From Tubulanus polymorphus (taxonomy: Eukaryota; Animalia; Nemertea): a stretch of 64,000 nt of DNA. Where the stretch lies: assembly GCF_964204645.1 (NCBI RefSeq), contig NC_134031.1, forward strand, positions 19,475,910-19,539,909. Reading direction: 5' to 3'. The translations under genes were made by a program, and so were the position numbers. The notes under the pieces were generated by a model. It was not told where the DNA came from, made no database searches, and worked only from the letters and a program-made list of their open reading frames with translations. Shown here piece after piece: positions 41,453 to 44,400 of the stretch (the first letter of the stretch is position 1; each line of letters opens with the position of its first letter).

Positions 41453-44400
41453 ATGGAGAAGGTGGGCTTTCTTACTACTTAAACTTCTACTTATTTCAGA
41501 TTCAGAACATGAAATAGTCTTTGTTTGGCTCATATTCCAAGTGATTTACGGGTATTATGCAAAAGGACGGATTAGACATGATGTACTTTTTTGAAAAGTA
41601 TTTGAAAGCTCTTTTATATTAATCAATTTTATTTCTTGAATACAGTTAAAACTCGGCTCATCTGGGTTACGAAAATTTTACGGCAATTTTTTAGATTATT
41701 TTCACATAAAAATATTAATATTCAATTCTATAGCTAAGAGACATTGGTGGTTTACTGATGCTGACATATTTGCTGAGTTACAGTAAGTATATTTTCGATC
41801 AACTACAAGGGAAATGATTCGCTTTATTATTGAAATTATGTTTCTATTTTATGAATAAATTCTCATTACTTGTCTTATTTAAATCCAGCGCCGTATTGTC
41901 GTGGTGAATCGCCATGTTCAAGGTACAAGAGGGAGTATTTTCAAAACGCGGACGGCACCTACTTGGTTAAGTTTCAACATGACGGCAAAGAAAAAAGTAC
42001 CTACGTTTACTGTAAAGATATGGGGACTAACAATCCTAAAGAATATTTGAATGTCCAACAAGAACAGAATTATATTGAAGTAGGCTGCGATGCGCCATAC
42101 AACTTTAAAGCTGATTGGAGTAAACTGCGCGTTCGGCTAGAGGTAGGCCATCACTAACTATCGTATTCTGATGTATACGACCAACCATGAATCAGAAATC
42201 AGAAAATTTATTTTCCGTCGTTTTCATTACAGAATCTTTCAGTAAAGCACTGCCAAAATTTTCGTTAGTTCTGGTTCTGTTTGCCTACAATAAAACTTAT
42301 TGAATGCATCAGCATTATAGTCCAGTTTCCCACTTTGAGAATAACATTAATAACTCGTATCTGATTCAGTTTCGAAGTTGTCTCACCTCTGCTGCAATGT
42401 GCCGTAAATTTGTCTGTATCCATACCACATAATCTAAGATATTCTTTTATACATCGAGATACTCGTTTAAGAGTCCATGAATCAACCTATCTAAGAGTTT
42501 CTATTTATTCATTCATCAGTCCATACAAAAAGTAGAAGGATACTACACAGGTTTATAAGATAAAGAAATGACACAAATATTACAAAGTTATAAATAGCCC
42601 CCCCCCCCCCCCTCCCAAAAAAAAACAGATAGCATAGTCGTACAATCAATACAAAAAGACAAAAGCAATTTACCGAAAAGATTTACACTCTTATATCAGG
42701 CGTAAATATTATTTGATATCATCAATGTTACAGTCGTTTGATCCATATTATCTTAGGTTAAGGAAATCTCGATATCGCGATGCAACTGCGTCAATTAATA
42801 TATTTCCTTACAGAAAAAAATATGTAGTTATATATTAACTTATAGGACATGAAGATAGATGCGAAAGACGCTAGCTACAGGAAATCCAGCGGGGAATTAA
42901 AAAACACGAAGAAAGACTACGCCTACGGCCTGGGCTGGGGTTGTAAAGGGCAAAGAATTACAGCTGGTACGTTCAACATGGATTTGACCGGCACAGGATT
43001 TGAATTCAAAGAGGTGGTACGTACATAAAAATGCAGCTTATTACTTGTATCAAAATGTTCTCTTGTGCAAATATTCGTTTACAAATAATATCATAAAGTG
43101 GGATGTTTCTATGTATAGAGATGGCATCGTGGTGATGGCGGTAATCCCAATACACAGGCCAAAGAATTTTTCCCTAGGCGAGTCGCAAATAAACATTCCG
43201 GAGGTGGATTGAGCGGTGAAACAATTCGAGGATACGGAGGAGGAAAAATATCGGCTGGAATTTTTCCGGACAGGTAGGCATCTACGGCGAGACGATTCTC
43301 GCGGCTCTTTTCTCTCTATTTTACGTCTTACCTCTGCGGGTTTGACTCTGTACTGTACTGATAATAAAGTCTTTGAGGACGAATCCCACTTTTTACTCGA
43401 GTGTCCCTCACTTCATCCTGCCAGAGTTTCCATTTTGTCCCCACTTGTATGTTTCACAGAGTTTGAGTCTTTTTGTGTTTATGATAAATTCTTATTTTTT
43501 GATGTCTTATAACAACGGAGATGAAATTGCCAGCCTTGTGTGTAACCTACATGTAGTTAACTCTTTATTTGCCCTCCGTTCAACACTTTGATTCTTTTAT
43601 ATTCTATTCACTTGATTGGATCGCCACCTAGTGTTTCCTTGCTGTTGTACTATATTTTGTTTTACATTTCACATATTTTATTTGCAAATATTTTCTATTC
43701 CTATGTTATCCATTATCAATGTATGTCCACTTTTGTACTGTTTTTCCTGTGTTTTGATGTTTATATTTTATTGCATGTCATTTCCTATGTAACTTGTATA
43801 TTATATGGAGCAATAATAGAATTAAAGTACAAGTTCAAGTGTATATACGGTTATATTGTAGTGAAACGAATGGACGATCCTTTATTCTCGTCCGATTCCA
43901 CGATCAGTAGAAAGGTGAACTTGTGCGTATTTTGTAGAGAGACTATTAAAAAATGTGTGCTCTCTATCGGAAGCGATCCTTTGTCGAACGTCTCTTAAAA
44001 TGCGAATCCAGACGAGGTTAATGCTATCTAAAGTATTTTTTTCGATGATCTGACGTGAATATTATTTATTTGATGTATGTCAAAGCTCGCGACTCGCAGG
44101 TCGGCCTTTTCGCTATAATATCCGAAGCTCACGACTCGCAGATCGGTCCTTGTCGGTTTCAGAACTTATTCAGTGTATCTCTAACTCCGACTCTAACCCT
44201 GTTCTGTTCTGATCTGAACTCCACTATCTCAAAAAATGTTTATTAGATTATTATTAGAGTATTCAGAACTATGATGATATTTATCATTATCATTATCATT
44301 ATTACCATTATCATTATTATCATTATAATATTTGACCTTAGATGAGTTTTTTTAAAAAGGTATGCCATTGCTGTTTGAATATATCTTTCTCCAAAGTTGG

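Follow-up and report, generated by a model that had tools for sequence, protein, structure and literature searches.

How do two gene copies that are otherwise almost identical come to differ by a tight cluster of amino-acid replacements? This question is raised by a 64,000-nucleotide stretch of DNA (hereafter the window) from contig 7 (positions 19,475,910-19,539,909) of the 268-Mb assembly of the ribbon worm Tubulanus polymorphus, which contains two copies, called A and B, of a gene encoding two tandem GON domains (GON1 and GON2) followed by an array of EGF modules. An earlier interpretation, made without database searches (the sequence-only reading), described a hypervariable patch in GON1 and attributed it to diversifying selection or patch gene conversion on the binding surface of an allorecognition, gamete-recognition or immune receptor. 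Our analysis led us to favour tentatively, at a probability of roughly 45%, one or a few complex mutational or micro-conversion block events in a fast-evolving, weakly constrained gene copy over an accumulation of many selected point changes.

Self-comparison of the window and its flanks showed that the two gene copies lie in two units that form a head-to-tail tandem repeat. The units, and the GON exons within them, were located as follows.

39133-57086, + strand: duplication unit A (17.95 kb), delimited by self-BLAST in the window and against its flanks; its content is the 3' portion of a trypsin-like gene, followed by the GON-GON-EGF14 gene and a further 6.4 kb downstream.
57086-71137 (window end at 64000), + strand: duplication unit B (14.05 kb); content as in unit A, with only two EGF exons and a 715-bp deletion.
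41889-42142, + strand: copy A, GON domain 1, exon one (Pfam GON positions 4-57); identical in A and B.
42846-43016, + strand: copy A, GON domain 1, exon two (GON model positions ~100-155); A/B differences at 42899 (silent), 42903 (N>Y) and 42954 (R>G).
43119-43273, + strand: copy A, GON domain 1, exon three, with a 20-nt patch at 43143-43162 that reads NPNTQAK in A and YRSTHAR in B.
44524-44848, + strand: copy A, linker and GON domain 2, exon one; A and B differ by P>S at 44561 and by an in-frame indel, of which A has the 18 bp (44566-44583) and B does not.
44947-45105 and 45398-45536, + strand: copy A, GON domain 2, exons two and three; identical in A and B.
59820-60073, 60775-60945, 61048-61202, 62452-62758, 62857-63015 and 63308-63446, + strand: the six GON exons of copy B.

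In a global alignment of positions 39000-46100 with 56950-64000, 18 unambiguous A/B substitutions were found between 39460 and 45924. Nine of these (42899, 42903, 42954, 43143, 43147, 43149, 43150, 43157 and 43162; in copy-B coordinates 60828, 60832, 60883 and 61072-61091) fell within 264 bp. One was silent, in a leucine codon of exon two (TTA>TTG), and eight were replacement changes, in seven codons; six of the nine were packed into 20 nucleotides. The 102-bp intron between the two affected exons, exon one of GON1 and the core exons of GON2 were identical in A and B, and the flanks of the 20-nt patch were unchanged, the nearest differences lying 189 bp away on the left and 1012 bp away on the right. 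Background divergence outside the patch amounted to 0.13% (17 substitutions in ~12.65 kb), and the 3' parts of the units were 99.5-99.75% identical (8 substitutions in 6.45 kb). At this background, ~0.36 substitutions are expected per 266 bp, which gives a probability of ~2e-10 for nine or more if changes are independent; for six changes in 20 nucleotides, the probability under independent point changes is ~1e-12. Alignment and translation thus reproduced the counts given in the sequence-only reading, as well as the identical intron and neighbouring exons and the scattered background that it had described. A further coding difference had escaped it, namely the P>S change at 44561 with the adjacent indel (VKVSRR) in the exon that links GON1 to GON2. 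Compound differences were also seen elsewhere at the locus: the pair 42899 and 42903, the substitution at 44561 with an indel five bases away, and many small indels.

Four public sequencing runs were compared with positions 39460-45459, beside the (TA)n repeat at 39115-39228. Of these, X1 probably stems from the source sample of the assembly and X2 from a second sample of the same study, X6 is an Illumina run from a different study and X5 an RNA run from 2014. B-type letters of the patch were present in contigs of X1 and X2 and A-type letters in raw reads of X6, and the linker exon occurred in its B-type form in an X1 contig and in its A-type form in X6 reads. The presence of both types of letters in public runs indicated that the A and B forms both exist as DNA. 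The reading frame that the sequence-only reading had used for exon 43119-43273 was upheld, together with the splice joins, by the RefSeq model XP_074655749.1 (249 aa; P0001). This model, the sole joined protein used here, spans the three middle exons as translated in this study and carries the A-type form; it lacks the first ~40 residues of GON1, its first residue is an internal Met, and its last residues (FNGWKH) result from an out-of-frame join. The cluster is a real, statistically striking and correctly described sequence feature.

The direction of the changes was read from the nearest paralogs, two genes on contig 12 with 79% exon DNA identity. Compared with copy A, these showed non-synonymous (dN) and synonymous (dS) divergences of 0.34 and 1.28, respectively, and their ratio (omega) of 0.27 indicated that the family has long been under moderate purifying selection. 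The motif DGGNPN was retained by copy A and by both contig-12 paralogs, and differences were limited to silent ones in the P and N codons. Copy B was derived at at least five of the six patch positions, copy A being identical to both contig-12 paralogs there. Retention of DGGNPN in these older paralogs indicated that the YRS of copy B is a recent, derived, block-like replacement and not a state of a long-term variable loop. With DGGNPN conserved, the amino acids of this motif do not vary among the older paralogs; the N>Y and R>G sites of exon two do fall in stretches of which both length and sequence are variable within the GON family of this genome. Consistent with a multinucleotide mutation, the patch changes were confined to one lineage and lay between the unchanged flanks described above.

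In the explanation that we favour, A and B would be copies of a nemertean-specific GON-GON-EGF gene in a young, unfixed head-to-tail duplication or, less likely, two haplotypes. One complex multinucleotide event, or a micro-conversion of at most 50 bp with a donor outside the assembly, would have turned the conserved N-P-N loop motif into Y-R-S..H..R on the B lineage. The preceding exon may have been changed by a two-base event and a single change, and the linker exon by a substitution with the adjacent 18-bp indel. Such changes would persist because these loops are exposed and under little constraint, in a fast-evolving family with an omega of ~1 among its young copies. The six patch changes would have arisen together and would be neutral or nearly so. 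Six sequential point changes in 20 nucleotides are not credible, because the background is only 17 substitutions over the ~12.65 kb outside the patch. Multinucleotide mutations are known to look like positive selection (Venkat, Hahn and Thornton, bioRxiv 10.1101/165969), and the patch resembles such cases in its adjacent changes on one lineage, nearly all of them replacements, its unchanged flanks and the very low silent background.

Several observations weigh against this explanation. Derived changes occurred on both lineages: the N at 42903 in copy A, where the paralogs have Y like copy B, and the loop in copy B. All four event clusters of the 1.7-kb stretch are exonic, eight of the nine patch substitutions replace amino acids, and none of the four or five silent positions in the 20-nt patch was changed. 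Between the two contig-12 paralogs, the same two exons showed five replacement and no silent changes, one of them at the site aligned with K>R and one two residues from N>Y. All six GON exons of copy B are open, with intact splice sites. Six changes in 20 nucleotides also exceed the two or three that are usual in multinucleotide mutations, and no template for a template switch was found within the window.

The alternative that survived best is positive or diversifying selection on exposed GON1 loops. The two forms would be alleles or paralogs of a binding surface that differ in function and that selection has maintained or pushed apart, as happens in recognition or immune molecules. We consider this unlikely, although it is the strongest competitor. 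Replacement divergence (9 of 930 sites) was 7-fold higher than divergence of non-coding DNA (15 of 11061), with P=4e-5 if nucleotides are treated as independent. The predominance of replacements next to an unchanged intron, the involvement of both lineages, the coincidence with the contig-12 pair and the location of the N>Y and R>G sites in family-wide variable stretches would also be consistent with selection. However, when the changes were counted as four events (42899 with 42903; 42954; 43143-43162; and 44561 with the adjacent indel), the replacement excess over non-coding DNA dropped to P=0.055, and spatial clustering at the event level lost its significance after scan correction. Over 1203 bp of GON coding sequence, analysed exon by exon, replacement (pN) and silent (pS) differences per site were 0.0097 and 0.0041, respectively, a ratio of 2.4 with a Fisher P of 0.70. 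Together with the conservation of DGGNPN between the old paralogs, these values do not demonstrate the diversifying selection proposed earlier.

Comparison with further copies pointed in the same direction. A search for additional alleles or paralogs recovered only the A and B forms in the genome and two states in a small set of three samples, with no new variant in X6, rather than more than two varying forms. Across the whole gene, the contig-12 pair differed by 16 replacement and 4 silent changes (omega 1.05); this value and the loss of an exon in one member suggested that young copies are weakly constrained. In three units of a second young GON family on contig 3, which are 99.3-99.5% identical, differences were spread evenly and formed no exon patch. 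The GON exons were not covered by any RNA contig of the public runs compared with the locus, and neither a start codon nor a signal peptide was found for the GON gene, at the locus or with the help of the contig-12 paralogs. The only ATG nearby, at 41453, is followed by a stop after 9 codons; an adjacent signal-peptide-like hydrophobic stretch (41453-41500) lies in another frame and has no ATG. This evidence does not raise the patch above a block mutation between young copies; diversifying selection is possible.

The arrangement of these relatives differs between contigs. The contig-12 paralogs form an inverted pair ~125 kb apart (8515000-8531000 and 8643600-8653500), one member of which has lost 1.8 kb including the linker and exon one of GON2. 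On contig 3 (22230001-22310000), GON-family units of ~12 kb, 96-99% identical, form a tandem and inverted array. Within it, two 4.9-kb stretches (34682-39600 and 42952-47886 in the coordinates of the joined loci) make up an almost perfect inverted pair.

Next in strength is short-tract gene conversion, in which an unsampled donor, either a divergent allele class or a paralog outside the haploid assembly, would have contributed at most 50 bp to an A-like copy. Six changes on one lineage within 20 nucleotides of otherwise unchanged sequence would fit such an event, and the family is rich in young duplicates able to exchange sequence. In addition, the X1 and X2 contigs are A-type at 42749 and B-type from 42899 onwards, a hint of mosaic haplotypes that bubble-popping during assembly could also explain. 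Searches for a donor were negative: the 23-nt B form was not found elsewhere in the 268-Mb assembly with up to 2 mismatches, nor was the 25-nt B form elsewhere in the window with up to 3 mismatches, and no k-mer of 12 or more was shared there. Moreover, the nearest paralogs carry the A-type motif and the tract would be unusually short, so that we regard this form of conversion as improbable. Of the earlier proposal of patch gene conversion, the idea of a block event survives as the favoured origin of the patch, but neither the window nor the genome supplied a donor.

XP_074655749.1 matched the Pfam GON model (PF08685) with 68.3 bits, against a cut-off of 22.6. Its residues 1-160 scored 29.7 bits at model positions 90-158, and exon one of GON1 scored 32.3 bits. 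The first exons of both GON domains matched the model; the patch exon (exon three of GON1) on its own had no Pfam match. The gene's GON carries a central motif of the DLTGTGF type. The Cys-rich C-terminal motif CGGxCGxC is replaced in GON1 by GYGGGKIS, while canonical GON exons on contigs 1, 4 and 6 retain its cysteines. To our knowledge, GON has been described only in ADAMTS9/GON-1, with a function in secretion. No metalloprotease (Reprolysin) or TSP1 domain accompanied the GON exons here, as open frames between 41000 and 50100 comprised GON and EGF exons only; the neighbouring protease is encoded by a distinct gene of the trypsin type, which has a stop codon of its own.

Homologues outside the genome were scarce. 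A phmmer search with exon one of GON1 against 1.84 billion representatives recovered only the XP_074655749.1 fragment itself. A 4978-aa snail protein that was also matched by phmmer had no GON match and is probably spurious. A word-based search with XP_074655749.1 returned only the query, its 90% cluster has a single member, and no solved structure was related to it in sequence. In the ESM Atlas, the protein lay near GON, COLFI and fibrinogen-C clusters by features, with a TM score of ~0.4 according to the Atlas's own model; a fibrinogen-like fold is only a lead. Fibrinogen-related proteins include invertebrate immune lectins, and proximity to these folds could be counted in favour of selection on a binding surface. 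Judged from their sequence context, the changed residues sit in Gly/Asn/Pro-rich, hydrophilic, loop-like stretches of GON1. A single-sequence AlphaFold2 model of XP_074655749.1 had a mean pLDDT of 29.8 and was unusable for residue placement. Two attempts to align the paralogs from exon translations left fragments misplaced.

In a more far-reaching interpretation, the B loop might represent one sampled state of a binding surface that is truly polymorphic, carried by a nemertean-specific GON-GON-EGF protein whose fold is fibrinogen/COLFI-like. More divergent, unsampled alleles would serve as conversion donors, copy number would differ between animals, and the surface would belong to an undescribed system of self/non-self, gamete or pathogen recognition. 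Nemertea would then have a first candidate for a recognition polymorphism, and GON a role not known before; we rate this interpretation as a long shot. The function known for GON is ER-to-Golgi transport (PMC3338439), which gives no reason to expect a polymorphic surface. With this role in secretion and two states only, the label of allorecognition, gamete or immune receptor given to the gene by the sequence-only reading found no direct support.

Whether copy B is a fixed second gene was addressed through the duplication boundaries and copy number in X6. A whole-genome search found no third copy of the unit and only the A and B forms. The units have large structural differences (14 versus 2 EGF exons, a 715-bp deletion and a 207-bp insertion) and no N separates them, so that they form a single gap-free stretch. 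At the junction (57086), the poly-C end of unit A ('...cccccag') is fused to (TA)n. The left breakpoint lies in a repeat of which dozens of copies are present on many contigs, and a second group of repeats lies next to the patch exon.

39115-39400, no strand assigned: palindromic MITE-like repeat with a central (TA)n of ~100 bp; holds the left duplication breakpoint, within the (TA)n.
43260-44460, no strand assigned: high-copy repeats (transposon remains) in the intron 3' of the patch exon; 30-100x in X6 against ~7x nearby, with many loose ends.

Copy number in X6 was derived from absolute depth and from the letters read, with a check on GC content; a depth step at the left boundary was not readable. 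Mean depth over 23 non-repeat bins was 7.55x, against a single-copy expectation of 7.2x (1934 million letters on 268 Mb), and bins near the mean GC content of the window averaged ~7.4x. None of the X6 reads was of the B type at 42899 (0/14), 42903 (0/12), 42954 (0/9), 44174 (0/6) or 44561 (0/5); at the remaining discriminating sites no B-type row was present in X6 either, and no further exon variant was listed. Over 43143-43162, X6 depth dropped to 0-4 reads, all of the A type, with neighbouring bins at 6-10x; this dip may be due to chance or to a local difference that keeps reads from aligning. The X6 animal has one copy, in the A form. Instead of the double depth and both sets of letters that a fixed duplication would give in every individual, X6 thus indicated that copy B is either an allele on a second haplotype or a duplicate that is not fixed in the species.

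Between these two possibilities, we lean towards a real, polymorphic duplication over an assembler-made tandem of two haplotypes, because the units are gap-free and because the join between a unit end and (TA)n would presumably have needed supporting reads. That the variant letters or the whole second copy are an artefact of sequencing or assembly is very unlikely: the single-copy depth of X6, from which every B-type letter is missing, and a junction in ~100 bp of (TA)n, a class of sequence that is hard to assemble, would agree with it, but B-type letters occurred in contigs of two runs from two samples and A-type letters in raw reads of X6, the structurally different units share one uninterrupted stretch, a chance poly-C/(TA)n join without supporting reads is improbable, and even a false tandem layout would leave both forms as real alleles.

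The remaining genes of the locus comprise the trypsin-like protease upstream of the GON exons and the EGF array downstream of them.

39633-39688, 39801-39920, 40024-40191, 40347-40488 and 40837-41005, + strand: last five exons of a trypsin-like serine protease (Pfam Trypsin), supported by a spliced X5 RNA contig with GT..AG joints.
45695-50045, + strand: EGF array of copy A, with 14 exons of the calcium-binding EGF type and a stop codon at 50043-50045.

An earlier exon of the trypsin gene ends at 38883, outside the duplication, so that the trypsin-like copy in unit B is 5'-truncated. The reference contains an 18-kb duplication that is polymorphic or misassembled, which affects how the trypsin-like gene and the two GON genes are annotated. 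The EGF array has 14 exons in copy A (45695-50045) and 2 in copy B (63605-64480), with repeat units of ~263 bp and ~662 bp. In copy B, the 715-bp deletion, with TTTT microhomology, swapped the last EGF for a 15-residue tail. A pure (GTC)n microsatellite in the intron before the last exon measures ~410 bp in A (49448-49857) and ~230 bp in B (64190-64420). Elsewhere in the window, two short tandem-repeat arrays, at 15537-15929 and 19270-19545, have periods of 43 bp and 33 bp, respectively, and copies that are 95-96% identical.

The locus chiefly offers a caution, in that a single block mutation between very young duplicates can resemble intense positive selection. It can be set beside several known systems. 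With ADAMTS9, ADAMTS20 and Caenorhabditis elegans GON-1, the gene shares a GON model match above the cut-off; unlike these proteins, it has no metalloprotease and no thrombospondin repeats, it places a tandem pair of GON domains before an EGF array, and its GON1 lacks CGGxCGxC. Hypervariable recognition genes, such as those encoding MHC peptide-binding sites, snail FREPs, Hydractinia Alr and abalone lysin, have many alleles or paralogs in which the same sites vary over the long term. The GON gene resembles them in that its replacements cluster within a limited section of an extracellular domain, in a family of variable copy number and possibly with a fibrinogen-like fold; unlike them, it has two states here, a motif that is conserved among older paralogs and a dN/dS that is not significant. 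Young polymorphic tandem segmental duplications offer a close likeness: as in such duplications, the locus combines a head-to-tail junction, a breakpoint in a simple repeat, a truncated neighbouring gene and copies that are 0.13% apart with absence of the duplication from another individual.

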